From: Ascidiella aspersa
Taxonomy: Eukaryota
Direction: 5' to 3'
Assembly (NCBI GenBank): GCA_963924565.1
Contig: OZ004609.1
Coordinates: 5,208,001 to 5,272,000 of the forward strand
Length of the DNA: 64,000 nt
Numbering within the stretch: the stretch's first letter is position 1; each line of letters opens with the position of its first letter. The position numbers and the translations under genes were made by a program. A model generated the notes under the pieces. That model did not search any database and was not told the DNA's origin. It saw only the letters and a list, made by a program, of their open reading frames with translations. Positions 4,559 to 53,641 of the stretch are shown here, piece after piece.

Positions 4559-6045
4559 CTTGGCCCAGCTAGAGTTGAGTTTTATGTTTTTTGTTTTGTG
4601 CTGTGTGATGTACGGTTTGTTGTGTTAATTACAATTTTTTGCACACTTACTTTTTGTTTTTGAATAAACGGTTGATAGTGCATAAATAAATATAGGTTTG
4701 TTTACAATTGTAGGTTCAGGAGCATAGAAAGTTTTATAACAGAGAAACAAAATGGCGGACTTATGGTCTCACTTATAGGTTTTAGATAAAGGGCGTGGTC
4801 AGATACAAAATGGCGGACAAATTTACCAAGTAGGGAAGTTAACAAGGTTAGTTAATAGCCTCTTCGCCCTTCCGCCAGTAGGAGCCCAACGACCTCCGTC
4901 AGTCAAGCCGATGACGTCGGCAAGACTGACAGGGGGTCCAACTAGCGCTACCACCAACAAACGGAAAAAAAGGCTATTAATTGCGTTTAAGTTACAATAT
5001 TATTATGCTGGCTTTTTTTAAACATAAACACAAAAGCCTGCAAACTAAATAAGCTGCAAACACCCTGAACACAGGCTGCTGCAGCCGAACTAAATATGTA
5101 CACTCCACAAATGAAAAAAAACGGATGGAAAAAATTGGAAAAAAATGGAATAATCGGAAGAAAACAAAAAAAAACGCAAAAAGCAGCGGGCAGTGGGATT
5201 CCCTTTGAATCGGGTAGTTTTTTTTCTCTCTCTATGTGTTTATTCAACAATGAAAAATAATAATCACCGAAAAACAAGTAATTTTTCATATATTTTTTGA
5301 GCCGGTAGATGGCGGTGAGGTGGTTAATGGAGGGAAAGGTGGCATGGGAAATCGTAATTATAATTCTGTGTGTTCAGGGTTATTATTATTTCTATATGGT
5401 CTTAGTTGTGCTATCTTGGGTCTATGTTCTTCATTAGGTGCTGTATTGACAGTTAAACTAGGCGATTTTGGGAAAGGACAATTACATATATAGATTTAGT
5501 TGCTCTATGGGATTTTATGTACACTGGGTTTTTGACTGAAGCATTAGGTCTTATTATATCGGCGTTTGCTTATTATGTTGTTATATATTATTTTTATCCA
5601 GGTTATTATATACGGGGGTGTGCCGTACTTCTCCAAAACCCTGACCGCGAAGTCAATGTCAACGCGGTCAAAGGCCTTGGAGAAGTCGGTGAGGATAATG
5701 GCTAACGGGTGGTTGTGGGATTGGGCGTATTGGATGGCTGCTTTGATGTTGTAATGAATATGCTGAATTTGTCTGTGTTTTAAGCCGCATTTTTGGTTTG
5801 CATGAATTCTGAATATGTTGTGTAAGTCTGTTAGTGATGGATTTTGTTATGATTTTATAATCTGTGTTTAGAATAGAGATTTTTTATCTCCTTTTTTTGG
5901 TATCAGCTTAACGACGGCCGTTCGCATGGACTTTGGCATTATATTCTGTAGATAAATGCTGTTTACTAATTCTGTCAAGTCCAGTTTTAGATGGGGCCAA
6001 AAGGTTATATAGAATTCTATCGGTAGGCCGTCGCAGCCTGGAGAC

Positions 6046-10150: not shown

Positions 10151-10786
10151 GTTGACCCAGCTAGAGTTGTTTTTATTTTATTTATGTGTTTTGCAGTGTT
10201 GATTTTCGCTTTTTTGTTATGAATAAAATTGCACGGATATATGGTTTTGAATTATTGATATAAAAGTATATAAATAGATTAGCTTATGATGTATATATAT
10301 ATAATTTGACACAAAATGGCGGATTAAATGGTGTTAACAGTAGGTTTTAGGCGGAAAAACGGGGACAAATTTAGGACACAAAATGGCGGCAAATAAATTT
10401 TTATGTTTAAATTTGAAAAGCCTGGCAGCCCGTCGGCGGGAGCTAGAGGGACTGCTGTCAATCAAGCCGACTGCGTCGGCAAGACTGACAGGAGCCCACG
10501 CAGTAGCCGCACGCCCAACAAACGGGAGGCCAGTCTATTCTTGCTAAGTTTTTACTGTTATACTACTAATGATTGTTGACTTTTAAACACAAAAAACACT
10601 TGCAAAACTGCACACAACCTGAACACAAGGCTGCTGCAGCCGAACTAAACTTGTAAGCTCCACAAATAATAAAAAATAAATGGAAAAAATTGAAAAAAGA
10701 TGGAAAAAATGGAAAAACGGAAAAAAACGCAAAAATCAGCGGGCAGCGGGATTCCCTTTGAATCGGGTAGTTGCTGGGTCCAACGA

Positions 10787-10816
10787 GTGGAGCAATTTAC
10801 CTTATTCAAATAGAAT
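10787..10816 (-). ncRNA. SL RNA 5' part (exon + 14 nt intron) fused to E2
   Basis: ATTCTATTTGAATAAG|GTAAATTGCTCCAC followed by element sequence. Confidence 0.85.
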
Positions 10817-26422: not shown

Positions 26423-27000
26423 GGTGGAACAAGTTACCTTATTCAAATAGAATACTTTAAAATCGCGCGGCTAAGGCTTTATGCGAAGGCCAACTTTCAA
26501 AAACGCCAGTTTACTCAATATACGATTGTATGACTTCACCACCTATATAAGGGTGTCGCCAGAGAGGCGCTGGTAAGTATTCACCATGCTATGTGGTCAC
26601 GTGGTACTTCGCGTTGTTCGAAATTTCTTGTCGCGCCCCGTTCGTTTCAACCGCGACATTTTTAACAAAAAATTAACGCTCAAAAAGCCAACTCAACATT
26701 GATCCCAATGCATATCGCGCGCTGTGGCACTTCAAAGGGCGGCCTACACGCAAGAGAGAAGCGCCCTACGGTAAGTTGGAGGAAGCGTCACCTGCGAAAG
26801 CCACGGGGGTCGGGCAGACTTGCAAAGGAGAGAGAGAAGCTGATTTTGGTTATGGGAGAGTGGGCCAGGGCTATACATGCATTTTCGCCATCTCTTAATT
26901 TGACAAAGGACGCGATTACGCGATTTGGGGATTTTGCTACATGAATGCAATACAGTGGGGGTAGCTTGGATAAGCGATTGATTGGTTCTAAAAAATATTC
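26423..27000 (-). repeat. SL RNA gene repeat unit (1 copy); SL exon 26438-26453 fused to E4
   Basis: 584-bp unit sequence; donor GTAACT. Confidence 0.95.
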
Positions 27001-33162: not shown

Positions 33163-34203
33163 ACTTGTTTGTAGGGGAAAGGCGCAAAGGGAAGAAAGAT
33201 ACGGAGGGAATAGTGCGATACAAGAAAGGATACAAACAAACAATGTGGTGAGTGTGTTTTTATTTTATTTTTTTTATTTACCGCTAGACGGCGCTAGAGA
33301 GCAGTGGATTTTTTTGGGGTTCGCCACAAACTGTTTATTTTTTATTAACCGCTAGACGGCGTGGTGTGTGTTTTTTTGATTTGTCGGTAGATGGCGCTAG
33401 TGTGGCAAATATTTGATCAGGGCTTCGCCTCAAACGCTTAAAGGGTGGGGCGAAAAAACGACAGAGTACGAATACGATGACAGGCGGTAACAAGACAGTT
33501 AAGCTCCGCTGCAAGTTTTGGGATGTCAGGAAAAAAACAAACAAAAAGTACGAGCCAATTAGTGACGTCACTTCCGACGTCGAGGGATGAAAAATTTACA
33601 AGTATTAGAAAAGGTAGTACCACTAAGGGGCAGTAGAGATCTCGAAAATTTGCCGGGAGCTTCGCTGTATTTTTAAATACGAGTAGGCGGAAAAAGTTCT
33701 AAGTCCGTCAAGAGAGTCTCTGAGACTTCTCTCGGCGTACTTAGAAGCGCAAAAAACCACAAACACGACAAAAAATTAATAACGAGGCGAAAGAGGAGGC
33801 ACCACTAATTGGCGCACTACTAGAACGTAGTTTACCCAAGTTGAAACACTTGGCGAGAAAGATTACAAAGGCGCAAAAAATCTACAATACGATCAATAAC
33901 AAACACACAAATAAAATTAGATAGCGGTCTTTTGCTTAGAGCAAAGAGTCGGTTTTAGCACGATTAAGTACCACAAATAGTAGAAAAGTAACAACAGGTC
34001 CCTACAAAAGCCTGCCTGCCGCCCCTGCAACTGTTTGTTACAGCGGCTGCTGACTAATGCCTTCTAGTAAGGCCTGACACGAAAAGCGCAACAAAAAAAC
34101 CTCTAATAGGTTGAAATTACAAAAGAGTACGTCACAAGGGTATATCCAAAAGGTTGAAAGGCTCGCAGTTGCGGGTGATTCTACGCAAATAAGATAAAGT
34201 CCG

Positions 34204-35370
34204 GGTGGAACAAGTTACCTTATTCAAATAGAATACTTTAAAATCGCGCGGCTAAGGCTTTATGCGAAGGCCAACTTTCAAAAACGCCAGTTTACTCAAT
34301 ATACGATTGTATGACTTCACCACCTATATAAGGGTGTCGCCAGAGAGGCGCTGGTAAGTATTCACCATGCTATGTGGTCACGTGGTACTTCGCGTTGTTC
34401 GAAATTTCTTGTCGCGCCCCGTTCGTTTCAACCGCGACATTTTTAACAAAAAATTAACGCTCAAAAAGCCAACTCAACATTGATCCCAATGCATATCGCG
34501 CGCTGTGGCACTTCAAAGGGCGGCCTACACGCAAGAGAGAAGCGCCCTACGGTAAGTTGGAGGAAGCGTCACCTGCGAAAGCCACGGGGGTCGGGCAGAC
34601 TTGCAAAGGAGAGAGAGAAGCTGATTTTGGTTATGGGAGAGTGGGCCAGGGCTATACATGCATTTTCGCCATCTCTTAATTTGACAAAGGACGCGATTAC
34701 GCGATTTGGGGATTTTGCTACATGAATGCAATACAGTGGGGGTAGCTTGGCTAAGCGATTGATTGGTTCTAAAAAATATTCCACCGTGGTGGAGCAACTT
34801 ACCTTATTCAAATAGAATACTTTAAAATCGCGCGGCTAAGGCTTTATGCGAAGGCCAACTTTCAAAAACGCCAGTTTACTCAATATACGATTGTATGACT
34901 TCACCACCTATATAAGGGTGTCGCCAGAGAGGCGCTGGTAAGTATTCACCATGCTATGTGGTCACGTGGTACTTCGCGTTGTTCGAAATTTCTTGTCGCG
35001 CCCCGTTCGTTTCAACCGCGACATTTTTAACAAAAAATTAACGCTCAAAAAGCCAACTCAACATTGATCCCAATGCATATCGCGCGCTGTGCCACTTCAA
35101 AGGGCGGCCTACACGCAAGAGAGAAGCGCCCTACGGTAAGTTGGAGGAAGCGTCACCTGCGAAAGCCACGGGGGTCGGGCAGACTTGCAAAGGAGAGAGA
35201 GGAGCTGATTTTGGTTATGGGAGAGTGGGCCAGGGCTATACATGCATTTTCGCCATCTCTTAATTTGACAAAGGACGCGATTACGCGATTTGGGGATTTT
35301 GCTACATGAATGCAATACAGTGGGGGTAGCTTGGCTAAGCGATTGATTGGTTCTAAAAAATATTCCACCG
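34204..35370 (-). repeat. SL RNA gene tandem repeat, 2 x 584 bp
   Basis: SL exons at 34219-34234 (fused to E5) and 34803-34818 (intact). Confidence 0.95.
34769..34818 (-). ncRNA. Intact spliced-leader RNA gene
   Basis: ATTCTATTTGAATAAG|GTAAGTTGCTCCACCACGGTGGAATATTTTTTAG: Ciona-type SL exon, GT donor, TCCAC/GTGGA hairpin, Sm-like A-U6-AG; 3' end approximate. Confidence 0.9.
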
Positions 35371-35982
35371 TTTTTTTTCTCTCTCTATGGGTTTATTTAC
35401 ATTAAACAAACGATAAACAAAGGCAATATAACAAAAACGAAAAATAAGAAAAACCAAAACAAACGAAAGAATAATTTTTTATATAGTAGTTATGATAGAA
35501 ATATGCTTCGATTTTGGAGCCGGTATATATGCAGGCTATTTAATTGGGAGTCTTTTTTAAGGTAGTTTGGACTTCGCGCGGTTTTAATGTGCTGTGTTAC
35601 TTGTTGGGGAATTGGCTATTTTTGGAGATGGCATTTTATATTTTATACTAATAGCTAGGTTTTGGACTTATGTTTGTAATTGCGTTTTATATATATGTGT
35701 CGATGTTTCGCTCTTAGTTATAGGACTATGTTTTTAAGGGAATTTTATGTTTTTAAGGACTATGTTTTTAAGGGAATTTTACACGGTTGGGTGATTTGCA
35801 GTGGTATGCAGGTTGAGTTCTTATATTTATATGGACAACCATTGTTTTATATGCTACTACATCACGGTTGGGTGGTTAGCGGTATGTACGTTGATATGTT
35901 ATATGTATACTATCAGGTAATGCTTTATGTGCCACTGCACTTTGAACTATTTTAGTTCAAGTTGTTGTGAAAAGTTGAGATT

Positions 35983-36054
35983 TTCGTCGGCGGGGTTTGA
36001 ACCCGCGGTCTCAGGACTTGATACCCGGTGACTTAGCCACTCGGCTATTCAGTT
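35983..36054 (-). promoter_or_regulatory. tRNA-derived Pol III promoter in E6 3' UTR
   Basis: A box TAGCCGAGTGG; B box GGTTCAAACCC; T-arm GCGGG/CCCGC; TTTT shortly downstream. Confidence 0.75.
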
Positions 36055-37222
36055 ATTGTGAGGAGGCGGTGAAAAGAGCGTATACGAATGACTAGTTTTG
36101 AGTTAAGGGGCTGTTTAGGCTGGGCTAGCTGGAAGTCATCCGCGGTTTGCGGATAGACATTTGCGTAGGTTGCAAGGGGGGCGAAGAAAATAAAAGGCGA
36201 GGAAAACAAATGTTTTAATAAGTAATATAACATAAGGAAATTAAATCTATCTCTTGCCAAACCGACAAGGGACGGCAAAACATTAAGTAATGGTTAGGTA
36301 TTCATCCGCATTTGGCGGAGGCTTAATATGCGAATTAAAGCAATAAATGGCTTTTAATAAACAGGATAGGTACAAAAAGGCACAGAATATATATAAAAAA
36401 GCAATGTAGAATTAAGTCTGCCTCTTGCCTAACCGGCAAGGGGCGGCAAATGACTTTAGGAAATAAGTAAATAAGATATTTATTAAGTCACGTGGTTTAG
36501 CCTCATGTGCTTATTCACAAAGGAGGTTTAGGCAGTGAAATTTTTAGGCTAGGTTTTTGGATGGTTGTGTATATTAGTAAAGGGTTATGACTTATAGAGC
36601 GGTTTATGGTAAGAAGATTATGATAAGTATTATCCAGTAGAGACGGTGACGTCACATTGTTTATACACATTACAGTCACTAGGCAACAGCCAGCTGTGTT
36701 TTGTTATTGTTATTGTTTTGGTTATATCAGCTGACCATTGCCTAGTGACGGCGGTTACATTTCAGGGAAAAAGAAGAACATAGGAAGTAAGCATGTGAAA
36801 TAATAATAGCAGATGTAACAAAAAGAAAAGAGTATGGTTTAAAAGTTGTCAAATAATTTTTAAAAGTGGATTATTTCACCCAAGACTTATTTCTATGGAT
36901 TATTATGTGGATCAAGAGTTTTAAGCAAAATTTAGAGGTATGTTAAATTAAAATTCATTGTTTTAACGAAATATACATTTGTTATATAATCACAAAGCAA
37001 TTTAAAATATAGTTTTTAACAAGAAGAAAAAATTTTTTTGATAGGAATTGGGACAAAGGTCAAGTTTCGGACTCTCTGGTTATCGAGTAGAGGCTGATCA
37101 TTAAGATACAGGTATTAATATATTATGGTTATTATTATTTTTTTGAAAATTTAGCAATTGCAGTGTTAATAGTAAATGAAGTAACAGTAGAAATAATTAT
37201 TTAATCGACAAAGATATACATA

Positions 37223-40200
37223 TTAAAATATTATAAGATTTTCGCTGCCGCTGTTAAGTTCCGAAGAAGTGTCAAGGTTGTAGAACTTGACCAGTCGCTC
37301 TGGTGACAAAATGCTCGCGAAGGATTTAAATTTGGTTCTGATTTTCCAGTATGTTTTATTGATAAATTTCGTTTGATCCCATATATAATCGTTTTCGAGA
37401 TCTTGTTTTTGTTTTGCTTTAATTAGGGTAGTTTTAAAAATATTTGCTAGTTTTATTATAAAAGGGTGAGTGTTACCTTGGGCTGGGCAGTTGTATTGTA
37501 GAATGGACGTGGATAGTTCTTCAGTACAGCCTCTGTCCTCGAGGATGAATGCCTCGAGTCTTCGGGCCAATTGTTTAACTACTGGACAATGCTCTATCAT
37601 ATGTGTTATGGTGTCTTCCTCATCTCTGCAAAGCTTGCAGTGCAGTTTGAATACCCTGCCCGTTTCGTTTTGGAAAATTTGGCGGTTCATTTTGAACTTA
37701 CCCCAAAAATAGCCTTTTTGTGCTATCCGATAATTGATTTCCCGTTCCGAATTGGTGTGAAAATATTTAACGTTATTGTTCTTTAAGAGAATGGTATTCC
37801 AACTGCATTGCGAGTCCTGCAGAGGGAGGGTGGTTGGAATATATTTATTTTTAACTATTTCTTTATATAGATGCTTTTGTTTTGCTGTTTCCCAGTCAAA
37901 GCTGTTTGCAGTTTGGCTGTTGATGATGTTATGATTATATATTTTGTTGATCCATTCTGGCCTTGTTTGTAAATTTTTTGGATAAGATTGGTTATATAAT
38001 TTGGGGTTTATTGATTTAGCTTTGAATCCAAGATGGTATCTGACCCATGAGTGCCAGAAGTCGGAGATGGTGTCCAAATTTTTATAATCTTTGAGCTGCT
38101 CGAGTTGAGCAGCTTCTATTTTAGCTCCGACATCTGGCACCCATAGGCCGCCTTCTTTTACCGGTGCGATTATTTTTTTCCTCGCTACGGGTTCCATGGA
38201 GAGTGGAAACCACAAAAAGCCAAAAATGAGGGTTTGAAATTGTTTAATGTATTTTTGCCTCATCGTTAGAATTCTAGCTGTAAAGATAATTTGGGACATG
38301 ATGAGGGCTTGTATCAAGTTTATTTTACCAAAGACCGAAAGGTTTCTATATTTGTGAATTTGGATTATGTTTTTAATTTTATCAATTTTTTTTGGCCAGT
38401 TTAGCTTTTCGTGGTCTCCACTCTCCCCGTAGCAGATTCCCAGTATTTTACATTCGGTTTTTACATATTCTGGGTATACAGTGGTAACTCTATGTTTCAG
38501 GTCCTTGTTAAAAGCAATTATTTCCGTTTTTTCGACGTTGAGTTTTTGTCCGCTTATTGTTTCATATTGTTTCAAGTTTAATAAAATTTGATTAATCGAT
38601 TCTACGTTGGTGGTAAAAAAAGTGCAGTCGTCTGCATACTGTTCCAGTTTGATTTCAGTTTTTCCAAATTTTGGTCCATTGATTTTAGGGTTGTTTTTTA
38701 TTATGTGGGCTAGTACGTCGGCACTGGCTATAAAGAGTAGCATCGACAGGGAGCATCCCTGTCGTATGCCTCTTTTGATTTGAATTTCGTTGCCAAGTTT
38801 CCCGTTGATAAGTATTTGGCTGGTGATATTTTTGTATATGATTTTTATCCAGTTTATCAGGTAGTTGGGTATGCCGTACTTCTCCAAGACCCTGATCGCG
38901 AAGCCAATGTCGACGCGGTCAAAGGCCTTGGAGAAGTCGGTGAGAACTAAAGCAAGCGGTTGTGTGTGTGATTTAGCATATTGTGATGCGGCTTTAATGT
39001 TATAGTGTATGTGTTGTATTGATCTGTTTTTTAGGCCGCATTTTTGATTTAGTGAGATTTTTTGATCTAGGTGTTGTGTAAGTCTGTTTGTGAGTGTTTT
39101 AGTGATAATTTTGTAATCTGTGTTGAGAAGAGAGATTGGTCTCCAGTTTTTTATTTGATTTTTATCTCCTTTTTTTGGTATTAATTTAACGACGGCCTTT
39201 CTCATGGACTTTGGCATTACATTTTGTAGGTAAATATTATTCACTAATTCTGTCAAGTCCAGTTTTAGTTGGGGCCAAAAGGTTATATAGAATTCTACCG
39301 GTAGGCCGTCGCAACCTGGAGACGAACCTCTGTTCATTTTGTTTATTGCTTGCTTTAGTTCTCGGGTGGTTATAAATAGTTGAGTTTTTGATGTGGGGGA
39401 TGTTCTAATTGTTTTCAGGATTTTCTTTTGTTTTTTACGTTTTACTGTGGGGTTTTGTCCCCACAGTTCGTCGTAAAAGGTGTGGATTATGGTTTCAATT
39501 TTTTGTGGGTTTGTTGTTGGGTTTTGATTTATCGGGTCGGTTAATTTGTGGATGCCGGTGTTGGTATTTCGGGTTTTCTCTTTTAAATAGAATTGGGTAT
39601 TAGGTATTTCGTCATTTTCAAAGTTTATGATTTTGGCTCGTTTTTTGGCTCCTTCCAGGATATTGTTTTCGTAGTCTTTGATTTTTTGTTTTGTTTCTAG
39701 GTATGTTTTGTTTGTTTGTAATTGCTGAGGGTCTATTTTTTCCATTAATGATTTTAAAGTTTGGGCGTATACTCGTTGTTGTTTTTCTTGTTGTTTTTTA
39801 AAATTGATGGAGAATGTTTTGGATTTTTTCCGAATTGATGATTTAAGATCTTCCCACCAATTTGATATGTGATGGTAGTCACATTTTTTTGTTTGCCAAT
39901 GCGCCAAATGTTCCCTTATTAAAGTTTTGTATTCCTCATTCTCCATCAATTGACAGTTCAATTTCCATATGCCTTTTCCCCATTTGGTCTGGGAGTTAAG
40001 TTTGATTTTAATAAAAGGGGATTGGGAATGGTCCGAAAAGGCATATGGAAAGTGCCCTGCTTGGTTGATCCAGGATGACAGGCTCTTGGTGTGGTAGATC
40101 CTGTCAATCCTGGATGCGGCTTTCCGTGCTATATACGTGTATGTTTTTTTGTGGGGGTAGAATAGTCGAAAGGAGTCAACTAAATCAAGTTGACTCCTCT

Positions 40201-40813
40201 CGACTATCCACCTCCTGGTTGCGATGTTTTGCCGTTGCCTGGTTGCGGTGTTGTCCTTGGGGTATTCAGTAAAATTGAAATCACCAAGGACGATATGGTT
40301 ATGACTATATTTATGGTTATGGCTATGTTTACGGTTATGGTTATGATTATGTTTATGGGGCTGCTTGATATCGTCTAGGACGGTGTCAAGCATCTCAAAG
40401 CGGGTTTTGACTTTTATTGAGCCTTCCCCAGACGGCAGATATAGATTATATATATTTATTTGTTCGTTTTCTTGTTTGTCGTCTGGGGACCATTCTATTG
40501 TTATTTGTTGGATTCTATCCGGGATGATTATTTTATGTTTTATACTATGTTTATTTAATTTGTCGAGGAAGGAGCCGTTGACTAAAAAAGCCGTGCCGGC
40601 GAAATTTAGATTAGAGTTAGTAGTGTTAGGATAGAAGATTATATTATGTTTATTTAGGATTGCATTAAATTTGGTAATATTAAAGTTATGAGTTTCCTGT
40701 ATACCCAGAATATGTATATTGTTTAGATTTACAAATGATAGAACACTGTCCAGTTTCTTACTTAATGAATTTACGTTGACAGAGGCTATCCTGATTTCGC
40801 CATCCACGTCCAT
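37223..40813 (-). CDS. E6 ORF2: APE endonuclease-RT, 1196 aa
   Basis: NVNS, QETH, GDFNF, RIDR, SDH; PGCDG, NWRPIS, DFSKAFDRV, QGCSLS, YADD; CKLC...H....C. Confidence 0.97.
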   Translation of the reverse strand: MDVDGEIRIASVNVNSLSKKLDSVLSFVNLNNIHILGIQETHNFNITKFNAILNKHNIIFYPNTTNSNLNFAGTAFLVNGSFLDKLNKHSIKHKIIIPDRIQQITIEWSPDDKQENEQINIYNLYLPSGEGSIKVKTRFEMLDTVLDDIKQPHKHNHNHNRKHSHNHKYSHNHIVLGDFNFTEYPKDNTATRQRQNIATRRWIVERSQLDLVDSFRLFYPHKKTYTYIARKAASRIDRIYHTKSLSSWINQAGHFPYAFSDHSQSPFIKIKLNSQTKWGKGIWKLNCQLMENEEYKTLIREHLAHWQTKKCDYHHISNWWEDLKSSIRKKSKTFSINFKKQQEKQQRVYAQTLKSLMEKIDPQQLQTNKTYLETKQKIKDYENNILEGAKKRAKIINFENDEIPNTQFYLKEKTRNTNTGIHKLTDPINQNPTTNPQKIETIIHTFYDELWGQNPTVKRKKQKKILKTIRTSPTSKTQLFITTRELKQAINKMNRGSSPGCDGLPVEFYITFWPQLKLDLTELVNNIYLQNVMPKSMRKAVVKLIPKKGDKNQIKNWRPISLLNTDYKIITKTLTNRLTQHLDQKISLNQKCGLKNRSIQHIHYNIKAASQYAKSHTQPLALVLTDFSKAFDRVDIGFAIRVLEKYGIPNYLINWIKIIYKNITSQILINGKLGNEIQIKRGIRQGCSLSMLLFIASADVLAHIIKNNPKINGPKFGKTEIKLEQYADDCTFFTTNVESINQILLNLKQYETISGQKLNVEKTEIIAFNKDLKHRVTTVYPEYVKTECKILGICYGESGDHEKLNWPKKIDKIKNIIQIHKYRNLSVFGKINLIQALIMSQIIFTARILTMRQKYIKQFQTLIFGFLWFPLSMEPVARKKIIAPVKEGGLWVPDVGAKIEAAQLEQLKDYKNLDTISDFWHSWVRYHLGFKAKSINPKLYNQSYPKNLQTRPEWINKIYNHNIINSQTANSFDWETAKQKHLYKEIVKNKYIPTTLPLQDSQCSWNTILLKNNNVKYFHTNSEREINYRIAQKGYFWGKFKMNRQIFQNETGRVFKLHCKLCRDEEDTITHMIEHCPVVKQLARRLEAFILEDRGCTEELSTSILQYNCPAQGNTHPFIIKLANIFKTTLIKAKQKQDLENDYIWDQTKFINKTYWKIRTKFKSFASILSPERLVKFYNLDTSSELNSGSENLIIF

Positions 40814-41000
40814 TCCGTCCGGTGAGAGGGATCACTGTGGAGAAAATGAGTATGATGAGCGACTGGCCAAGGAGGAAGAATTATACATGAAATAAAAACT
40901 ACGATTACGGTTATGATTATAATTACAGTTACGTTTACGATTATGATATGCTTTGTTATGGAATTGGTGTTCGTGTGAATGTGTGTGATGCCTAGCTTGG

Positions 41001-42329
41001 TCAGCATCCTTTCTTTTTCTTTCTGTTTTTTCTTTTTTGGCGTTGGGGTGGGGTTCCGTCGGTTGGGGTGTCGGTGGTGCTGAGTGTTCTTTTGTTACTG
41101 CTAGGGTCATGGCCTTCAGATTCAGTGCTTTCAGATTCGTCGGAGCTGGGAGCTTCTTGCTGGAATTTGGAGATTAGATTTGAAACTAGTGTTGGGCTTG
41201 GGATTATGATCCGCGGGGATTGGACATCAGTGGACGACAGGGGGTGGTGGGTGGGGGTGTGATAGGTGGAGTTAACGGATTGATTTTGTATGATTGCATG
41301 GGAGGTTGAAGGGCGTTGGGGTCGGGGAGGTGGGGAGTTTTGGGCAGGGGGTGGAGGTGGGGGAGAGAGGGTGCTGCGGGAAGGGGACAGGTGATTGGGT
41401 TGCGAGGTGTGTAGCTGGTCTGGTTTGGGTTCATCAGGTTTGTTTGCTTGGTTGTGGTTGTTTTCGTTGTCGGAATTGCTGGATTGGTTTTCATCGATTA
41501 CGAGGTTAGAGTTGTTGTTGTCGGATAGGTCAGAGGGTACGTCATCTTGCCTTAGGCTTTCAGAGGATTGGTTAGGATTTTTATTTGGTTTGTTTGCTGC
41601 ATTTTGGTTTGTAATAGCTGGGAATTCTTCATTGTATTTTTCTTGGTTGGTGATTTCTTCTGGATTTTTGTTGGTTGTCGCAGAGGGTGATGTACCCTCT
41701 TGGCTTTTGTTTGGTTGGTTTGCGTTATTTTTTTGTGGACACTGGTTAGACCAGTGTCCCCTTTGGCGGCAGAATCGGCAGTTCGGGCCGAATGATTCGC
41801 CTGGTTTTATCACCTGTATGCGGTTTTGAAAGATTGAAATTTCAGTTGGGATATTTGAGATTATTGGTTCTTCTAGGCTGAGGTTGACGTAACCGTTTCG
41901 GATTTCTGGGTGGTTTCTGTGAGATAACCATTGGTGATTTTTATATTTTCCCCAGCTTAGCTTGCTGGGGAGGGCTTCTAATCGGTCGTCTGGTAGTTCA
42001 AATGGGACGGGGAAGAGGGTTATACGGTATAGGGGTTTGGAGGGGGTAAAGGATTGGAGGAGGATTTGGGTGCCGTCCACCTCAATCCTCTCCCCGCGGA
42101 TGTATTTTTCGTGTAGTTGGTTTCTAATGTGTTGTTGCTGGTTTTTGAAAGTAATTGTAAAGATTTTTTTTTCCCTGTTCAGAGTTCGAATGCCAATAAT
42201 TGATGTTTTATAGTGGTGCAGTGGTTGACGTTCTTGGATTAAATTGAAAAAGTTTTCTAGGGTGAATGGTCCGGTGGTCGAGATTTGAATGTTGATCGTA
42301 TGATCCTGGCATAGCGTAGAGGTCGCCAT
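41001..42329 (-). CDS. E6 ORF1 (family C), single CCHC knuckle, 442 aa
   Basis: CRFCRQRGHWSNQC; ATG at 42329 (MATSTL). Confidence 0.92.
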   Translation of the reverse strand: MATSTLCQDHTINIQISTTGPFTLENFFNLIQERQPLHHYKTSIIGIRTLNREKKIFTITFKNQQQHIRNQLHEKYIRGERIEVDGTQILLQSFTPSKPLYRITLFPVPFELPDDRLEALPSKLSWGKYKNHQWLSHRNHPEIRNGYVNLSLEEPIISNIPTEISIFQNRIQVIKPGESFGPNCRFCRQRGHWSNQCPQKNNANQPNKSQEGTSPSATTNKNPEEITNQEKYNEEFPAITNQNAANKPNKNPNQSSESLRQDDVPSDLSDNNNSNLVIDENQSSNSDNENNHNQANKPDEPKPDQLHTSQPNHLSPSRSTLSPPPPPPAQNSPPPRPQRPSTSHAIIQNQSVNSTYHTPTHHPLSSTDVQSPRIIIPSPTLVSNLISKFQQEAPSSDESESTESEGHDPSSNKRTLSTTDTPTDGTPPQRQKRKNRKKKKGC

Positions 42330-43587
42330 GCTGACCAAGCTAGAGTTGTTTTTATTTTATTTATGTGTTTTGCAGTGTTGATTTTCGCTTTTTTGTTATG
42401 AATAAAATTGCACGGATATATGGTTTTGAATTATTGATATAAAAGTATATAAAAGTATGTATGGGCAAAGATATAGTTGTATAAAAGTATATAAATAGAT
42501 TAGCTTATGATGTATAAATATATGATCTGACACAAAATGGCGGATTAAATGGTGTTAACAGTAGGTTTTAGGCGGGAAAACGGGGACAAATTTAGGACAC
42601 AAAATGGCGGCAAATAAATTTTTATGTTTAAATTTGAAGAGCCTGGCAGCCCTGCCGTCGGCGGGAGCTAGAGGGACTGCTGTCAATCAAGCCGACTACG
42701 TCGGCAAGACTGACAGGAGCCCACGCAGTAGCCGCACGCCCAACAAACGGGAGGCCAGTCTATTCTTGCTAAGTTTTTACTGTTATATTACTAATGGTTG
42801 TTGACTTTCAAACACAAAAAACACCTGCAAAACTGCACACAACCTGAACACAAGGCTGCTGCAGCCGAACTAAACTTGTAAGCTCCACAAATAATAAAAA
42901 ATAAATGGAAAAAATTGAAAAAAGATGGAAAAAATGGAAAAAACGGAAAAAAAAAAAAAAAAACGCAAAAAAGCAGCGGGCAGCGGGATTCCCTTTGAAT
43001 CGGGTAGTTGCTGGGTCCAACGAGTGGAGCAATTTACCTTATTCAAATAGAATACTTTAAAATCGCGCGGCTAAGGCTTTATGCGAAGGCCAACTTTCAA
43101 AAACGCCAGTTTACTCAATATACGATTGTATGACTTCACCACCTATATAAGGGTGTCGCCAGAGAGGCGCTGGTAAGTATTCACCATGCTATGTGGTCAC
43201 GTGGTACTTCGCGTTGTTCGAAATTTCTTGTCGCGCCCCGTTCGTTTCAACCGCGACATTTTTAACAAAAAATTAACGCTCAAAAAGCCAACTCAACATT
43301 GATCCCAATGCATATCGCGCGCTGTGCCACTTCAAAGGGCGGCCTACACGCAAGAGAGAAGCGCCCTACGGTAAGTTGGAGGAAGCGTCACCTGCGAAAG
43401 CCACGGGGGTCGGGCAGACTTGCAAAGGAGAGAGAGGAGCTGATTTTGGTTATGGGAGAGTGGGCCAGGGCTATACATGCATTTTCGCCATCTCTTAATT
43501 TGACAAAGGACGCGATTACGCGATTTGGGGATTTTGCTACATGAATGCAATACAGTGGGGGTAGCTTGGCTAAGCGATTGATTGGTT

Positions 43588-43637
43588 CTAAAAAATATTC
43601 CACCGTGGTGGAGCAACTTACCTTATTCAAATAGAAT
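43588..43637 (-). ncRNA. Intact spliced-leader RNA gene
   Basis: Identical to 34769-34818. Confidence 0.9.
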
Positions 43638-44171
43638 ACTTTAAAATCGCGCGGCTAAGGCTTTATGCGAAGGCCAACTTTCAAAAACGCCAGTTTACTC
43701 AATATACGATTGTATGACTTCACCACCTATATAAGGGTGTCGCCAGAGAGGCGCTGGTAAGTATTCACCATGCTATGTGGTCACGTGGTACTTCGCGTTG
43801 TTCGAAATTTCTTGTCGCGCCCCGTTCGTTTCAACCGCGACATTTTTAACAAAAAATTAACGCTCAAAAAGCCAACTCAACATTGATCCCAATGCATATC
43901 GCGCGCTGTGCCACTTCAAAGGGCGGCCTACACGCAAGAGAGAAGCGCCCTACGGTAAGTTGGAGGAAGCGTCACCTGCGAAAGCCACGGGGGTCGGGCA
44001 GACTTGCAAAGGAGAGAGAGGAGCTGATTTTGGTTATGGGAGAGTGGGCCAGGGCTATACATGCATTTTCGCCATCTCTTAATTTGACAAAGGACGCGAT
44101 TACGCGATTTGGGGATTTTGCTACATGAATGCAATACAGTGGGGGTAGCTTGGCTAAGCGATTGATTGGTT

Positions 44172-44805: not shown

Positions 44806-45955
44806 ACTTTAAAATCGCGCGGCTAAGGCTTTATGCGAAGGCCAACTTTCAAAAACGCCAGTTTACTCAATATACGATTGTATGACTTCACCACCTATAT
44901 AAGGGTGTCGCCAGAGAGGCGCTGGTAAGTATTCACCATGCTATGTGGTCACGTGGTACTTCGCGTTGTTCGAAATTTCTTGTCGCGCCCCGTTCGTTTC
45001 AACCGCGACATTTTTAACAAAAAATTAACGCTCAAAAAGCCAACTCAACATTGATCCCAATGCATATCGCGCGCTGTGGCACTTCAAAGGGCGGCCTACA
45101 CACAAGAGAGAAGCGCCCTACGGTAAGTTGGAGGAAGCGTCACCTGCGAAAGCCACGGGGGTCGGGCAGACTTGCAAAGGAGAGAGAGAAGCTGATTTTG
45201 GTTATGGGAGAGTGGGCCAGGGCTATACATGCATTTTCGCCATCTCTTAATTTGACAAAGGACGCGATTACGCGATTTGGGGATTTTGCTACATGAATGC
45301 AATACAGTGGGGGTAGCTTGGATAAGCGATTGATTGGTTCTAAAAAATATTCCACCGTTTTTTTTTCTCTCTCTATGGGTTTATTTACATTAAACAAACG
45401 ATAAACAAAGGCAATATAACAAGAACGAAAAATAAGAAAAACCAAAACAAACGAAAGAATAATTTTTTATATAGTAGTTATGATAGAAATATGCTTCGAT
45501 TTTGGAGCCGGTATATATGCAGGCTATTTAATTGGGAGTCTTTTTTAAGGTAGTTTGGACTTCGCGCGGTTTTAATGTGCTGTGTTACTTGTTGGGGAAT
45601 TGGCTATTTTTGGAGATGGCATTTTATATTTTATACTAATAGCTAGGTTTTGGACTTATGTTTGTAATTGCGTTTTATATATATGTGTCGATGTTTCGCT
45701 CTTAGTTATAGGACTATGTTTTTAAGGGAATTTTATGTTTTTAAGGGAATTTTACACGGTTGGGTGATTTGCAGTGGTATGCAGGTTGAGTTCTTATATT
45801 TATATGGACAACCATTGTTTTATATGCTACTACATCACGGTTGGGTGGTTAGCGGTATGTACGTTGATATGTTATATGTATACTATCAGGTAATGCTTTA
45901 TGTGCCACTGCACTTTGAACTATTTTAGTTCAAGTTGTTGTGAAAAGTTGAGATT

Positions 45956-46027
45956 TTCGGCGGCGGGGTTTGAACCCGCGGTCTCAGGACTTGATACCCG
46001 GTGACTTAGCCACTCGGCTATTCAGTT
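45956..46027 (-). promoter_or_regulatory. tRNA-derived Pol III promoter in E7 3' UTR
   Basis: Same A and B boxes as E6. Confidence 0.75.
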
Positions 46028-47195
46028 ATTGTGAGGAGGCGGTGAAAAGAGCGTATACGAATGACTAGTTTTGAGTTAAGGGGCTGTTTAGGCTGGGCTA
46101 GCTGGAAGTCATCCGCGGTTTGCGGATAGACATTTGCGTAGGTTGCAAGGGGGGCGAAGAAAATAAAAGGCGAGGAAAACAAATGTTTTAATAAGTAATA
46201 TAACATAAGGAAATTAAATCTATCTCTTGCCAAACCGACAAGGGACGGCAAAACATTAAGTAATGGTTAGGTATTCATCCGCATTTGGCGGAGGCTTAAT
46301 ATGCGTATTAAAGCAATAAATGGCTTTTAATAAACAGGATAGGTACAAAAAGGCACAGAATATATATAAAAAAGCAATGTAGAATTAAGTCTGCCTCTTG
46401 CCTAACCGGCAAGGGGCGGCAAATGACTTTAGGAAATAAGTAAATAAGATATTTATTAAGTCACGTGGTTTAGCCTCATGTGCTTATTCACAAAGGAGGT
46501 TTAGGCAGTGAAATTTTTAGGCTAGGTTTTTGGATGGTTGTGTATATTAGTAAAGGGTTATGACTTATAGAGCGGTTTATGGTAAGAAGATTATGATAAG
46601 TATTATCCAGTAGAGACGGTGACGTCACATTGTTTATACACATTACAGTCACTAGGCAACAGCCAGCTGTGTTTTGTTATTGTTATTGTTTTGGTTATAT
46701 CAGCTGACCATTGCCTAGTGACGGCGGTTACATTTCAGGGAAAAAGAAGAACATAGGAAGTAAGCATGTGAAATAATAATAGCAGATGTAACAAAAAGAA
46801 AAGAGTATGGTTTAAAAGTTGTCAAATAATTTTTAAAAGTGGATTATTTCACCCAAGACTTATTTCTATGGATTATTATGTGGATCAAGAGTTTTAAGCA
46901 AAATTTAGAGGTATGTTAAATTAAAATTCATTGTTTTAACGAAATATACATTTGTTATATAATCACAAAGCAATTTAAAATATAGTTTTTAACAAGAAGA
47001 AAAAATTTTTTTGATAGGAATTGGGACAAAGGTCAAGTTTCGGACTCTCTGGTTATCGAGTAGAGGCTGATCATTAAGATACAGGTATTAATATATTATG
47101 GTTATTATTATTTTTTTGAAAATTTAGCAATTGCAGTGTTAATAGTAAATGAAGTAACAGTAGAAATAATTATTTAATCGACAAAGATATACATA

Positions 47196-50100
47196 TTAAA
47201 ATATTATAAGATTTTCGCTGCCGCTGTTAAGTTCCGAAGAAGTGTCAAGGTTGTAGAACTTGACCAGTCGCTCTGGTGACAAAATGCTCGCGAAGGATTT
47301 AAATTTGGTTCTGATTTTCCAGTATGTTTTATTGATAAATTTCGTTTGATCCCATATATAATCGTTTTCGAGATCTTGTTTTTGTTTTGCTTTAATTAGG
47401 GTAGTTTTAAAAATATTTGCTAGTTTTATTATAAAAGGGTGAGTGTTACCTTGGGCTGGGCAGTTGTATTGTAGAATGGACGTGGATAGTTCTTCAGTAC
47501 AGCCTCTGTCCTCGAGGATGAATGCCTCGAGTCTTCGGGCCAATTGTTTAACTACTGGACAATGCTCTATCATATGTGTTATGGTGTCTTCCTCATCTCT
47601 GCAAAGCTTGCAGTGCAGTTTGAATACCCTGCCCGTTTCGTTTTGGAAAATTTGGCGGTTCATTTTGAACTTACCCCAAAAATAGCCTTTTTGTGCTATC
47701 CGATAATTGATTTCCCGTTCCGAATTGGTGTGAAAATATTTAACGTTATTGTTCTTTAAGAGAATGGTATTCCAACTGCATTGCGAGTCCTGCAGAGGGA
47801 GGGTGGTTGGAATATATTTATTTTTAACTATTTCTTTATATAGATGCTTTTGTTTTGCTGTTTCCCAGTCAAAGCTGTTTGCAGTTTGGCTGTTGATGAT
47901 GTTATGATTATATATTTTGTTGATCCATTCTGGCCTTGTTTGTAAATTTTTTGGATAAGATTGGTTATATAATTTGGGGTTTATTGATTTAGCTTTGAAT
48001 CCAAGATGGTATCTGACCCATGAGTGCCAGAAGTCGGAGATGGTGTCCAAATTTTTATAATCTTTGAGCTGCTCGAGTTGAGCAGCTTCTATTTTAGCTC
48101 CGACATCTGGCACCCATAGGCCGCCTTCTTTTACCGGTGCGATTATTTTTTTCCTCGCTACGGGTTCCATGGAGAGTGGAAACCACAAAAAGCCAAAAAT
48201 GAGGGTTTGAAATTGTTTAATGTATTTTTGCCTCATCGTTAGAATTCTAGCTGTAAAGATAATTTGGGACATGATGAGGGCTTGTATCAAGTTTATTTTA
48301 CCAAAGACCGAAAGGTTTCTATATTTGTGAATTTGGATTATGTTTTTAATTTTATCAATTTTTTTTGGCCAGTTTAGCTTTTCGTGGTCTCCACTCTCCC
48401 CGTAGCAGATTCCCAGTATTTTACATTCGGTTTTTACATATTCTGGGTATACAGTGGTAACTCTATGTTTCAGGTCCTTGTTAAAAGCAATTATTTCCGT
48501 TTTTTCGACGTTGAGTTTTTGTCCGCTTATTGTTTCATATTGTTTCAAGTTTAATAGAATTTGATTAATCGATTCTACGTTGGTGGTAAAAAAAGTGCAG
48601 TCGTCTGCATACTGTTCCAGTTTGATTTCAGTTTTTCCAAATTTTGGTCCATTGATTTTAGGGTTGTTTTTTATTATGTGGGCTAGTACGTCGGCACTGG
48701 CTATAAAGAGTAGCATCGACAGGGAGCATCCCTGTCGTATGCCTCTTTTGATTTGAATTTCGTTGCCAAGTTTCCCGTTGATAAGTATTTGGCTGGTGAT
48801 ATTTTTGTATATGATTTTTATCCAGTTTATCAGGTAGTTGGGTGTGCCGTACTTCTCCAAGACCCTGATCGCGAAGCCAATGTCGACGCGGTCAAAGGCC
48901 TTGGAGAAGTCGGTGAGAACTAAAGCAAGCGGTTGTGTGTGTGATTTAGCATATTGTGATGCGGCTTTAATGTTATAGTGTATGTGTTGTATTGATCTGT
49001 TTTTTAGGCCGCATTTTTGATTTAGTGAGATTTTTTGATCTAGGTGTTGTGTAAGTCTGTTTGTGAGTGTTTTAGTGATAATTTTGTAATCTGTGTTGAG
49101 AAGAGAGATTGGTCTCCAGTTTTTTATTTGATTTTTATCTCCTTTTTTTGGTATTAATTTAACGACGGCCTTTCTCATGGACTTTGGCATTACATTTTGT
49201 AGGTAAATATTATTCACTAATTCTGTCAAGTCCAGTTTTAGTTGGGGCCAAAAGGTTATATAGAATTCTACCGGTAGGCCGTCGCAACCTGGAGACGAAC
49301 CTCTGTTCATTTTGTTTATTGCTTGCTTTAGTTCTCGGGTGGTTATAAATAGTTGAGTTTTTGATGTGGGGGATGTTCTAATTGTTTTCAGGATTTTCTT
49401 TTGTTTTTTACGTTTTACTGTGGGGTTTTGTCCCCACAGTTCGTCGTAAAAGGTGTGGATTATGGTTTCAATTTTTTGTGGGTTTGTTGTTGGGTTTTGA
49501 TTTATCGGGTCGGTTAATTTGTGGATGCCGGTGTTGGTATTTCGGGTTTTCTCTTTTAAATAGAATTGGGTATTAGGTATTTCGTCATTTTCAAAGTTTA
49601 TGATTTTGGCTCGTTTTTTGGCTCCTTCCAGGATATTGTTTTCGTAGTCTTTGATTTTTTGTTTTGTTTCTAGGTATGTTTTGTTTGTTTGTAATTGCTG
49701 AGGGTCTATTTTTTCCATTAATGATTTTAAAGTTTGGGCGTATACTCGTTGTTGTTTTTCTTGTTGTTTTTTAAAATTGATGGAGAATGTTTTGGATTTT
49801 TTCCGAATTGATGATTTAAGATCTTCCCACCAATTTGATATGTGATGGTAGTCACATTTTTTTGTTTGCCAATGCGCCAAATGTTCCCTTATTAAAGTTT
49901 TGTATTCCTCATTCTCCATCAATTGACAGTTCAATTTCCATATGCCTTTTCCCCATTTGGTCTGGGAGTTAAGTTTGATTTTAATAAAAGGGGATTGGGA
50001 ATGGTCCGAAAAGGCATATGGAAAGTGCCCTGCTTGGTTGATCCAGGATGACAGGCTCTTGGTGTGGTAGATCCTGTCAATCCTGGATGCGGCTTTCCGT

Positions 50101-50786
50101 GCTATATACGTGTATGTTTTTTTGTGGGGGTAGAATAGTCGAAAGGAGTCAACTAAATCAAGTTGACTCCTCTCGACTATCCACCTCCTGGTTGCGATGT
50201 TTTGCCGTTGCCTGGTTGCGGTGTTGTCCTTGGGGTATTCAGTAAAATTGAAATCACCAAGGACGATATGGTTATGACTATATTTATGGTTATGGCTATG
50301 TTTACGGTTATGGTTATGATTATGTTTATGGGGCTGCTTGATATCGTCTAGGACGGTGTCAAGCATCTCAAAGCGGGTTTTGACTTTTATTGAGCCTTCC
50401 CCAGACGGCAGATATAGATTATATATATTTATTTGTTCGTTTTCTTGTTTGTCGTCTGGGGACCATTCTATTGTTATTTGTTGGATTCTATCCGGGATGA
50501 TTATTTTATGTTTTATACTATGTTTATTTAATTTGTCGAGGAAGGAGCCGTTGACTAAAAAAGCCGTGCCGGCGAAATTTAGATTAGAGTTAGTAGTGTT
50601 AGGATAGAAGATTATATTATGTTTATTTAGGATTGCATTAAATTTGGTAATATTAAAGTTATGAGTTTCCTGTATACCCAGAATATGTATATTGTTTAGA
50701 TTTACAAATGATAGAACACTGTCCAGTTTCTTACTTAATGAATTTACGTTGACAGAGGCTATCCTGATTTCGCCATCCACGTCCAT
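47196..50786 (-). CDS. E7 ORF2: APE endonuclease-RT, 1196 aa
   Basis: Essentially identical to E6 ORF2 (KYGTP versus KYGIP). Confidence 0.97.
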   Translation of the reverse strand: MDVDGEIRIASVNVNSLSKKLDSVLSFVNLNNIHILGIQETHNFNITKFNAILNKHNIIFYPNTTNSNLNFAGTAFLVNGSFLDKLNKHSIKHKIIIPDRIQQITIEWSPDDKQENEQINIYNLYLPSGEGSIKVKTRFEMLDTVLDDIKQPHKHNHNHNRKHSHNHKYSHNHIVLGDFNFTEYPKDNTATRQRQNIATRRWIVERSQLDLVDSFRLFYPHKKTYTYIARKAASRIDRIYHTKSLSSWINQAGHFPYAFSDHSQSPFIKIKLNSQTKWGKGIWKLNCQLMENEEYKTLIREHLAHWQTKKCDYHHISNWWEDLKSSIRKKSKTFSINFKKQQEKQQRVYAQTLKSLMEKIDPQQLQTNKTYLETKQKIKDYENNILEGAKKRAKIINFENDEIPNTQFYLKEKTRNTNTGIHKLTDPINQNPTTNPQKIETIIHTFYDELWGQNPTVKRKKQKKILKTIRTSPTSKTQLFITTRELKQAINKMNRGSSPGCDGLPVEFYITFWPQLKLDLTELVNNIYLQNVMPKSMRKAVVKLIPKKGDKNQIKNWRPISLLNTDYKIITKTLTNRLTQHLDQKISLNQKCGLKNRSIQHIHYNIKAASQYAKSHTQPLALVLTDFSKAFDRVDIGFAIRVLEKYGTPNYLINWIKIIYKNITSQILINGKLGNEIQIKRGIRQGCSLSMLLFIASADVLAHIIKNNPKINGPKFGKTEIKLEQYADDCTFFTTNVESINQILLNLKQYETISGQKLNVEKTEIIAFNKDLKHRVTTVYPEYVKTECKILGICYGESGDHEKLNWPKKIDKIKNIIQIHKYRNLSVFGKINLIQALIMSQIIFTARILTMRQKYIKQFQTLIFGFLWFPLSMEPVARKKIIAPVKEGGLWVPDVGAKIEAAQLEQLKDYKNLDTISDFWHSWVRYHLGFKAKSINPKLYNQSYPKNLQTRPEWINKIYNHNIINSQTANSFDWETAKQKHLYKEIVKNKYIPTTLPLQDSQCSWNTILLKNNNVKYFHTNSEREINYRIAQKGYFWGKFKMNRQIFQNETGRVFKLHCKLCRDEEDTITHMIEHCPVVKQLARRLEAFILEDRGCTEELSTSILQYNCPAQGNTHPFIIKLANIFKTTLIKAKQKQDLENDYIWDQTKFINKTYWKIRTKFKSFASILSPERLVKFYNLDTSSELNSGSENLIIF

Positions 50787-50973
50787 TCCGTCCGGTGAGA
50801 GGGATCACTGTGGAGAAAATGAGTATGATGAGCGACTGGCCAAGGAGGAAGAATTATACATGAAATAAAAACTACGATTACGGTTATGATTATAATTACA
50901 GTTACGTTTACGATTATGATATGCTTTGTTATGGAATTGGTGTTCGTGTGAATGTGTGTGATGCCTAGCTTGG

Positions 50974-52302: not shown

Positions 52303-53064
52303 GCTGACCAAGCTAGGAGTGTATTTTATGTATATTTTGTTGTGATGTTGCGATTATTTTTTGGTGTTATATTCAATAAATACAAAAATGGGTTAATTTT
52401 CAAGGGTGTTTTTGTGTTTTACACGATTTGCATATAGTTTTACAGAGCACGAATAGGGTGTTGTTATTTAAATAAGTGTATAAATATTAAGAGTTATGAA
52501 TATATATAAATATATATATATATATTAGATTATATAAATCAATTTGAAGTTTTCTGATAGAAAATGGCGGACTTATGGTCCCACCAATAAGTTAAAGTTG
52601 TGAAAAAAATGGCGGCAAAGCAGAAACAAAATGGCGGCCGAACAGCGGCGTTAAATATAATTAAAGAACAAAGGACTAAGATAGAAGCCCCCTAAGCCCA
52701 CCGCTGGTGGGAGCCAACGGACCGCCGCCAGTCAAGCCGACGACGTCGGCAAGACTGACAGAGGTCCAAGGACTTTTGCCACCCACAAATGGGAAAAAAA
52801 GGCCGCTAGCTGTCTAATAACAATAACAGTAAGGCTGCTTCTACTTTTATACATAAAAGAAAAAACTGCACACTGCAACTGAAAACACAACTTAAGCACA
52901 ACCTGAAAACCAGGGCTGCTACAGCCACTAAATCTCCACAAACTATAATAAATAATTCTAAAAAAATTGGAAAAACTGGAAAAAATGGAAAACAGGAAAA
53001 AAAAGCAAAAAAGCAGCGGGCAGCGCGATTCCGTTTGAATTGGGTAGTTGCTAGGGTCCAACAC

Positions 53065-53641
53065 GTGGAGCAAATTACCTTATTCAAATAGAATACTTTA
53101 AAATCGCGCGGCTAAGGCTTTATGCGAAGGCCAACTTTCAAAAACGCCAGTTTACTCAATATACGATTGTATGACTTCACCACCTATATAAGGGTGTCGC
53201 CAGAGAGGCGCTGGTAAGTATTCACCATGCTATGTGGTCACGTGGTACTTCGCGTTGTTCGAAATTTCTTGTCGCGCCCCGTTCGTTTCAACCGCGACAT
53301 TTTTAACAAAAAATTAACGCTCAAAAAGCCAACTCAACATTGATCCCAATGCATATCGCGCGCTGTGGCACTTCAAAGGGCGGCCTACACGCAAGAGAGA
53401 AGCGCCCTACGGTAAGTTGGAGGAAGCGTCACCTGCGAAAGCCACGGGGGTCGGGCAGACTTGCAAAGGAGAGAGAGAAGCTGATTTTGGTTATGGGAGA
53501 GTGGGCCAGGGCTATACATGCATTTTCGCCATCTCTTAATTTGACAAAGGACGCGATTACGCGATTTGGGGATTTTGCTACATGAATGCAATACAGTGGG
53601 GGTAGCTTGGATAAGCGATTGATTGGTTCTAAAAAATATTC
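53065..53641 (-). repeat. SL RNA gene repeat unit (1 copy); SL exon 53079-53094 fused to E7
   Basis: 584-bp unit sequence; donor GTAATT. Confidence 0.95.

Follow-up and report, generated by a model that had tools for sequence, protein, structure and literature searches.

A predicted hairpin over the captured spliced leader of LINEs inserted in the SL RNA genes of an ascidian

LINEs lodged in spliced leader (SL) RNA genes have so far been known from trypanosomes and nematodes, as exon insertions that carry no splice site. In trypanosomatids SLACS, CZAR and CRE insert inside the SL exon (nt 11/12), hence they carry no splice donor, and to our knowledge no leader-complementary arm has been described for them. 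They are among the systems closest to the one reported here, being LINEs found only in SL RNA genes and, for SLACS, having an RNA that starts with the host leader; the transcription start reported for SLACS is +1 of the SL RNA gene that it interrupts (PMC3447711). The nematode element NeSL-1, non-LTR and site-specific, has spliced-leader genes as its target (PMC4640811). The elements described here live in a chordate host, are of the APE type and are inserted behind the donor, so that every transcript would start with a cap-proximal 5' splice site able to destroy it. In a full-text search of the literature we came across no account of LINEs in the SL RNA genes of ascidians.

LINEs behind the donor of ascidian SL RNA genes

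[quoted passage not shown] The 16-nt SL word has 12 matches in it, all on the minus strand, for 0.16 expected, and this exon is identical to the spliced leader given for Ciona (PMC7986045). At least 70 bases upstream are identical for all 12 SL starts; five of these head intact genes (584-bp units) and the other seven are interrupted at nt 30-31. Behind the SL exon the intact genes have GUAAGU, then a small stem-loop (UCCAC / GUGGA), then a run of U6; their donor is the consensus AAG|GUAAGU, and the AGCUUUGG motif described in C. intestinalis is missing from the intron. Three stem-loops and an Sm site are the usual layout of an SL RNA (PMC3795323); the predicted fold of the intact A. aspersa SL RNA leaves the donor unpaired and contains nothing like the closed leader described below (z -0.6). 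Searching the genome (308.6 Mb, 75 contigs) gave about 320 intact SL RNA genes, in a single array on contig 3 (5.10-5.46 Mb). In several ascidians (the window and metagenome contigs L053-L073) an A/T-rich box resembling ATAAA/ATAAG stands at about -29 to -24 of the SL RNA genes, and each gene is closed by a U6-8 run.

Many SL RNA genes of the window are thus interrupted, at about nt 30, by bodies of 7.7 kb. The seven interrupted genes carry their first 30-31 nt, then a body with two ORFs (a CCHC ORF1, and an ORF2 with APE and RT), belonging either to Family C or to its sister Family A/B. The Family C element is a site-specific LINE in the loop of the intron stem of the SL RNA gene: the break point falls after nt 30 in all Family C leaders, and in two elements an A8-A9 tail immediately precedes nt 33 of the SL RNA gene. 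The best documented copy and its surroundings are laid out as follows.

43054..43637, minus strand: intact 584-bp SL RNA gene unit, of which 43054-43123 are the last 70 nt or more, the upstream/promoter region
35371..43023, minus strand: Family C element body, with 5' UTR, two ORFs and poly(A) at 35371-35378 (A8)
41001-42338, minus strand: ORF1 of this body, CCHC
37223-40813, minus strand: ORF2 of this body, APE and RT
35353..35370, minus strand: SL RNA gene resuming at nt 33, with the 3' half of the stem and the U-run, then the remainder of the 584-bp unit
5198..5219, minus strand: tandem joint, where the poly(A) of an upstream element abuts a Family C 5' end that starts at hairpin nt 45-47, with no SL leader

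ORF2 of both families matches the Pfam domains Exo_endo_phos and RVT_1, with the APE domain N-terminal. The domains, the poly(A) joined to the target and the copying through RNA make these elements members of the site-specific APE-type non-LTR retrotransposons; the evidence for RNA-mediated copying comes from ectopic A/B copies whose leader begins at nt 1 amid unrelated flanks. The best named relatives in protein searches are Tx1/L1-like, at 24-25% identity. We considered and rejected membership in the SLACS/CZAR/CRE or NeSL groups, which are of the RLE type, since the endonuclease here is an N-terminal APE and the insertion is intronic (nt 30-32). An interrupted locus still has the SL exon and GU, but cannot be taken for a functional SL RNA gene: 7.7 kb now separate these from the 3' half of the stem and from the U-run, and the G at intron position +5 is lost. 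Rfam models had no match at the gathering threshold anywhere in the window, nor any at E<=1 within 42300-43700; an HDV-like or other self-cleaving ribozyme and a known SL RNA family were discarded accordingly.

Genome-wide we count ten leader-bearing Family C copies, all in the array, plus two that are truncated in 5' at tandem joints. [quoted passage not shown] From nt 692 through their 3' ends, the C1 and C3 elements of the window (35300-43053 and 45300-53094) show 99.6% identity, while their heads share about 80% identity in nt 1-216 and are patchy or unalignable up to nt ~690, which suggests that 5' UTR heads were swapped on one body. Besides the joint at 5198..5219, a second head-to-tail joint (L042:1657-1691) has a downstream Family C copy that starts at hairpin nt 33, also without SL leader. 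At these two joints reverse transcription, or else joining, may have stopped inside the hairpin; alternatively the second element may have inserted into the target-like 5' end of the first.

The hairpin, its conservation and its relatives

In a reading of the window from its sequence only, the 5' end of Family C had been described as carrying an arm that folds back over the SL exon and the splice donor, in a hairpin of 66 nt at 42988-43053. The sequence and its place were correctly given, on the minus strand, and the four helices named there are all found in the minimum free energy fold. The description as an element end holds for nt 31-66 only, as nt 1-30 are the sequence of the host SL RNA gene. 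The parts of the hairpin and its other copies in Family C are these.

42988..43053, minus strand: 66-nt hairpin predicted by folding to close the leader, subfamily C1, RNA nt 1-66
43038..43053, minus strand: SL exon, nt 1-16, host gene sequence, identical to the 16-nt Ciona-type SL (PMC7986045)
43024..43037, minus strand: SL RNA intron nt 17-30, retained upstream of the insertion, with the donor GU at 43036-43037
43033, minus strand: nt 21, intron +5, with A in place of the G of intact genes
42988..43023, minus strand: element-borne arm, nt 31-66, which rebuilds the 3' half of the stem (UGGA) and pairs with nt 25-22, 19-16, 13-7 and 5-1
42966..42987, minus strand: conserved motif after the hairpin, nt 67-88, C-rich GCTGCCCGCTGC, then the first T-run
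10751..10816, minus strand: second C1 hairpin (element E2), identical in sequence
53028..53094, minus strand: C3 hairpin (element E7), 67 nt, with all differences at unpaired positions and U at +5

The fold consists of five helices, nt 1-5/62-66, 7-13/54-60, 16-19/48-51, 22-25/43-46 and 26-29/35-38, i.e. 24 bp. Its energy is -19.1 kcal/mol for C1, with a z of -3.47, and none of 200 shuffled sequences folded as well. The versions of the two other subfamilies adopt the same fold at -17.8 and -18.7 kcal/mol (z -3.8 and -4.0). As had been proposed, the structure is thus repeated unchanged in E2, and E7 keeps the paired positions. When leader nt 1-20 were tested as a duplex with the following 120 nt, we obtained -14 to -15 kcal/mol, compared with -7 +/- 1.7 for shuffles (0-2/500 as good); across 179 further windows of this element, not one did better than the arm. 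The hairpin is retained when 100, 300 or 720 nt are folded, with a mean pair probability of 0.88-0.92. Its register, said to begin at SL nt 1, does so: complementarity ends exactly there, the next base of the arm, a C, facing a T at -1. The exon-intron junction is buried in a predicted helix, G16|G17-U18-A19 being paired with UACC. Family C shows no strand asymmetry (-19.1 kcal/mol for the sense strand vs -20.4 for the antisense).

Is the arm conserved for its pairing? In an alignment of five to seven Family C 5' ends from the four subfamilies, 8 of 12 unpaired arm positions vary, with one insertion in addition, vs one paired position of 24—an A>G change in C4 that retains a U.G pair; variation is therefore concentrated at the unpaired positions (Fisher p = 1.3e-4). 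Covariation across genomic copies, which had been put forward as a check on the hairpin, is absent: pairing is invariant for 24 of 24 pairs (100%). This is because the leader strand is a fixed host sequence. Conservation alone is not specific, since nt 67-88, the motif that precedes T-rich repeats resembling T6CCA, are likewise conserved in Family C, and part of the conservation may thus reflect another function. The specific signature is the interleaving of variable bulges with invariant helices.

Position +5, the most conserved of the intron after GU, behaves in a second manner. Among the matches listed, G is present at +5 in 100 of 100 intact genes (320 match the intact pattern). Leaders with another base there number 23 genome-wide, with no intact gene found among them, and the 17 that lie inside the array are all attached to elements. 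Seven copies, of C1 and C2, have A there; three, of C3, have U; and seven, of A/B, have C, so that 17 of 18 element-attached leaders have lost the G, the exception being one A/B copy; at least two or three independent substitutions are needed. In Family C this loss is not structural, because G21 would pair with C47 and strengthen the helix. The association of repeated +5 loss with the elements points to a selection against a working donor, as judged from sequence comparison, and the lineage-specific states imply that the leader is inherited with the element. Four ectopic leaders without G, at C3:23186469, C5:26522781, C6:30047279 and C6:30122023, are neither Family C nor any of the A/B copies examined.

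The sister Family A/B has a hairpin as well. Its ORF2 is only 37% identical to that of Family C, and the 5' UTRs cannot be aligned outside the leader.

34178..34234, minus strand: Family A/B hairpin, 57 nt, with a differently built arm pairing with nt 1-7 and 9-20, five pairs being G.U
18644-18700, 26397-26453 and 60825-60881, minus strand: further A/B hairpins

This hairpin has about -16.6 kcal/mol (z -3.3), and its arm ends at nt 1 as in Family C. Here the strands differ, -16.6 kcal/mol for the sense vs -8.8 kcal/mol for the antisense; as the G.U pairs favour the sense strand, the A/B hairpin is a feature of the RNA. Among A/B copies, pairing is kept in three of four arm variants, and a variant of the leader, C25>U, gains a pair with the A/B arm.

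For other ascidians, metagenome contigs were searched for exact matches to the SL followed by GUAA, which gave 29 loci. Among them are intact SL RNA genes from several species, each with GUAAGU, the stem-loop and a U6-8 run, and also related LINEs (27-31% ORF2 identity) lying in the same stem loop with the same promoters upstream. The 5' ends of these LINEs pair with intron nt 20/21-31 over 11-12 bp (0-4 of 1000 shuffles as good), and their arms extend the intron stem to +4/+5; +4 to +6 are occluded; one compensatory change, U>C / A>G, distinguishes L052 from L050. GU is left unpaired, the G at +5 is kept and nt 1-19 are largely free. An arm against the SL exon, considered as a universal trait, was not retained: in L050, L052, L058 and L056 the duplex between exon and arm is no better than shuffles (33-411/500) and only the anti-intron stems are significant. 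From these comparisons, having an arm complementary to the leader appears general among the SL-gene LINEs seen, and covering the exon and the GU appears particular to two families of this genome.

Sequences headed by the SL are also found in other settings. At 173 dispersed sites of the genome the SL exon is directly followed by a base other than G (1 in the control; examples L086-L115). These sites comprise several repeated families with unrelated flanks, some with motifs like C/D boxes (TGATGA...CTGA), and look like retrocopies of trans-spliced RNAs or SL-headed repeats of the SINE kind; of the 30 examined among the 173, none matches the LINEs of the window. On the metagenome contigs L046, L067, L071, L060, L062, L065 and L047, the SL followed by GGTAA(A/C) heads an A-rich leader and a Gag-like ORF with CCHC, and is preceded by DNA other than an SL promoter. 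These loci have the look of a further type of retroelement headed by the SL, present in other ascidians.

Start of the element RNA and possible roles of the hairpin

The register of the hairpin had been said to make sense only for a transcript that starts at SL +1. For the sister family this start is established. Two ectopic A/B copies, L079 on contig 2 and L083 on contig 7, have SL nt 1 as their first base, next to unrelated flanking DNA, with 3-4 nt of microhomology at the joints, and L084, an older A/B copy, is much like them; the A/B RNA that was retrotransposed therefore began at +1. As regards Family C, the genome search gave no ectopic leader-bearing copy, and we infer the same start from the register of the arm and from the lineage-specific variants at nt 21, which lies inside the "target" part of the leader.

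From these data we propose the following scheme. A Family C element, with no upstream sequence of its own, would be transcribed from the promoter of the interrupted gene at SL +1, and its RNA would open with the SL exon of the host, followed by a 5' splice site of consensus type and by one half of the stem of the SL RNA. The first 36 nt of the element would close this leader in cis, through a 24-bp helix that rebuilds the stem and reaches nt 1. Together with the loss of the G at +5, this clamp would bar the spliceosome from the donor, be it in trans, as an SL, or in cis, towards downstream acceptors. Full-length RNA would then survive with a 30-nt leader homologous to the target, and this leader would allow precise re-annealing of the cDNA to a new SL RNA gene. 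This reading, the hairpin as a clamp that masks the captured donor from the spliceosome, is the best we have and we give it a probability of about one half, the anti-splicing function being what we infer from the structure. It is favoured because the junction is buried in both families and the G at +5 repeatedly lost, because the elements of other lineages occlude +4 to +6, and because splicing would cost the RNA its cap, its leader and its 5' UTR. On the other hand the arm spans the whole exon to nt 1, more than a mask requires; the elements of other ascidians expose GU and keep the G at +5; and the antisense strand of the Family C hairpin folds just as stably. Classical SL RNAs of nematodes and trypanosomes also count against masking, their donor being inside stem I and nevertheless functional. 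Besides, the chimeric RNA has neither the U-run nor an Sm-like site of SL RNA beside the donor, and may perhaps be inert as a trans-splice donor anyway.

Alternatively the helix might serve integration: proteins of the element would recognize it, as the R2 protein does with its 5' RNA, or it would position the end of the RNA or cDNA at the upstream half of the target for precise 5' joining. Some leader-complementary arm is indeed present at the junction in all lineages of SL-gene LINEs seen, though the stretch of leader covered differs between them; the stem of the target itself (UCCA/UGGA) is restored by the arm; and both tandem joints, where the homologous upstream target is missing, are truncated inside the hairpin (nt 33; nt 45-47). 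However, the homology needed for 5' joining is already present in the 30-nt leader, annealing would face competition from a hairpin in the cDNA, and the A/B antisense hairpin is weak; we hold a role in integration to be unlikely. That the helix reaches exactly nt 1 in both families, beyond what a splice site needs, would also be expected of a cap-proximal helix which protects the 5' end from exonucleases and decapping, hides the SL from the readers of mRNAs, or damps cap-dependent translation. Such a role leaves the repeated loss of the G at +5 unexplained and fits poorly with other ascidian lineages, in which nt 1-19 are largely free; we consider it clearly improbable. Alternatively the donor would be regulated rather than silenced, the closed form giving the full-length template and the open form being spliced in cis to an acceptor before ORF2, yielding an SL-ORF2 mRNA as in the balanced splicing of retroviruses. 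A good acceptor of this kind exists.

40835..40846, minus strand: site resembling a splice acceptor (polypyrimidine and CAG), 21 nt ahead of the ORF2 ATG (40813)

Weakened donors and semi-stable donor hairpins, such as the HIV-1 SD hairpin, are moreover typical of balanced splicing. Against this, the genome search gave no retrocopy joining the SL to the acceptor above the control level, and host SL trans-splicing could equally serve the ORF2 acceptor; a regulated donor is in our opinion more improbable still.

The sequence after the hairpin opens a further view. In Family C, 42870-42987 hold the C-rich motif, then T6, T17 and repeated runs resembling T6CCA; in Family A/B, CC-T4-GG stands at nt 79-90. 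Judging by their composition these runs could be Sm-like sites or resemble Pol III terminators, and if the genes are transcribed by Pol III, T-runs right after the hairpin would stop it. In the RNA, the U-tract that follows the hairpin is the C-rich motif, U6 and G in Family C, and CC-U4-GG in A/B. The hairpin with this tract might therefore mimic a classical SL snRNA, stem I and Sm-like site included, that is dead for splicing: it would load an Sm core, and gain a hypermethylated cap, borrowing the snRNP pathway for stability or nuclear re-import, and the loss of the G at +5 would spare the LINE RNA from being consumed as a donor. We regard this as a long shot. Even lower stands the view of a neutral relic, an inverted repeat inherited from an ancestral event at the 5' junction (snap-back, or inverted duplication of the first 26 nt of the target). 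The antisense arm is a diverged copy of SL RNA nt 1-26, and this is a plausible origin for it; but paired positions are invariant across 20-30% divergence while the unpaired ones interleaved with them are saturated with changes, and A/B, at 37% ORF2 identity, keeps an independent version with transitions that preserve G.U pairs, so that neutrality is already disfavoured. Finally the arm might act in trans, as an antisense to free SL RNA, to SL-bearing mRNAs or to the sense strand of the target DNA, to all of which it is complementary by construction. Its partner in cis is 30 nt away, with a pair probability of ~0.9, and bulges and G.U pairs weaken the pairing between RNA and DNA. The suggestion, made from the sequence only, that the arm pairs with target DNA or free SL RNA is thus unsupported, as pairing within the molecule prevails and the A/B arm functions in the sense RNA only; of all the readings considered here, this is the one in which we place the least belief.

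The hairpin among known systems

Two lineages, with 37% ORF2 identity, both pair an element-encoded strand to the leader up to nt 1, and both have lost the G at +5. If the clamp does block splicing, this would be a compact natural case in which a parasite disarms an RNA-processing signal of its host that it is obliged to keep. The clamp would also lend itself to finding out which features let an ascidian SL RNA act as a donor in trans-splicing, in embryos that can be electroporated.

Compared with SLACS, CZAR and CRE, which have a restriction-like endonuclease, the present elements have an APE; NeSL-1 is likewise apart, as it belongs to the RLE/NeSL-Utopia lineage, targets the SL exon and is unrelated to the APE-type elements described here. 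In classical SL RNAs, stem-loop I pairs the exon with the intron and encloses the donor in a helix, which resembles the fold predicted here. At the opposite, the classical donor is a working one, the intact SL RNA of A. aspersa is without such a fold, and the partner strand is provided by the transposon. R2 and R1, studied in the Eickbush laboratory, are reportedly promoterless site-specific LINEs, co-transcribed with rRNA, in which the co-transcribed target is said to aid uniform 5' junctions. With them our elements would share a structured 5' end that handles host-derived upstream RNA. They differ in the means: the HDV-like 5' ribozyme of R2 cuts the leader off, whereas here the leader is kept and, by our reading, clamped, and no Rfam match is found.

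For the donor itself, an analogue is the hairpin of the major splice donor (SD) of HIV-1, which holds the 5' splice site in the leader and limits splicing, so that full-length RNA survives. It belongs to an unrelated retrovirus and is a short hairpin over the virus's own donor; here the donor is that of a captured host SL, and the arm spans the whole exon. Among LINEs, the Tx1/L1-like group includes target-specific elements of the APE type, such as Keno in U2 genes and Mutsu in 5S genes, and we know of no clamp on a leader in these families. The likeness, which comes from named relatives at 24-25% identity, extends to an ORF2 with APE and RT, an ORF1 with CCHC and the choice of multicopy small-RNA genes as targets; the difference is that the target here is the SL RNA gene, in a chordate.
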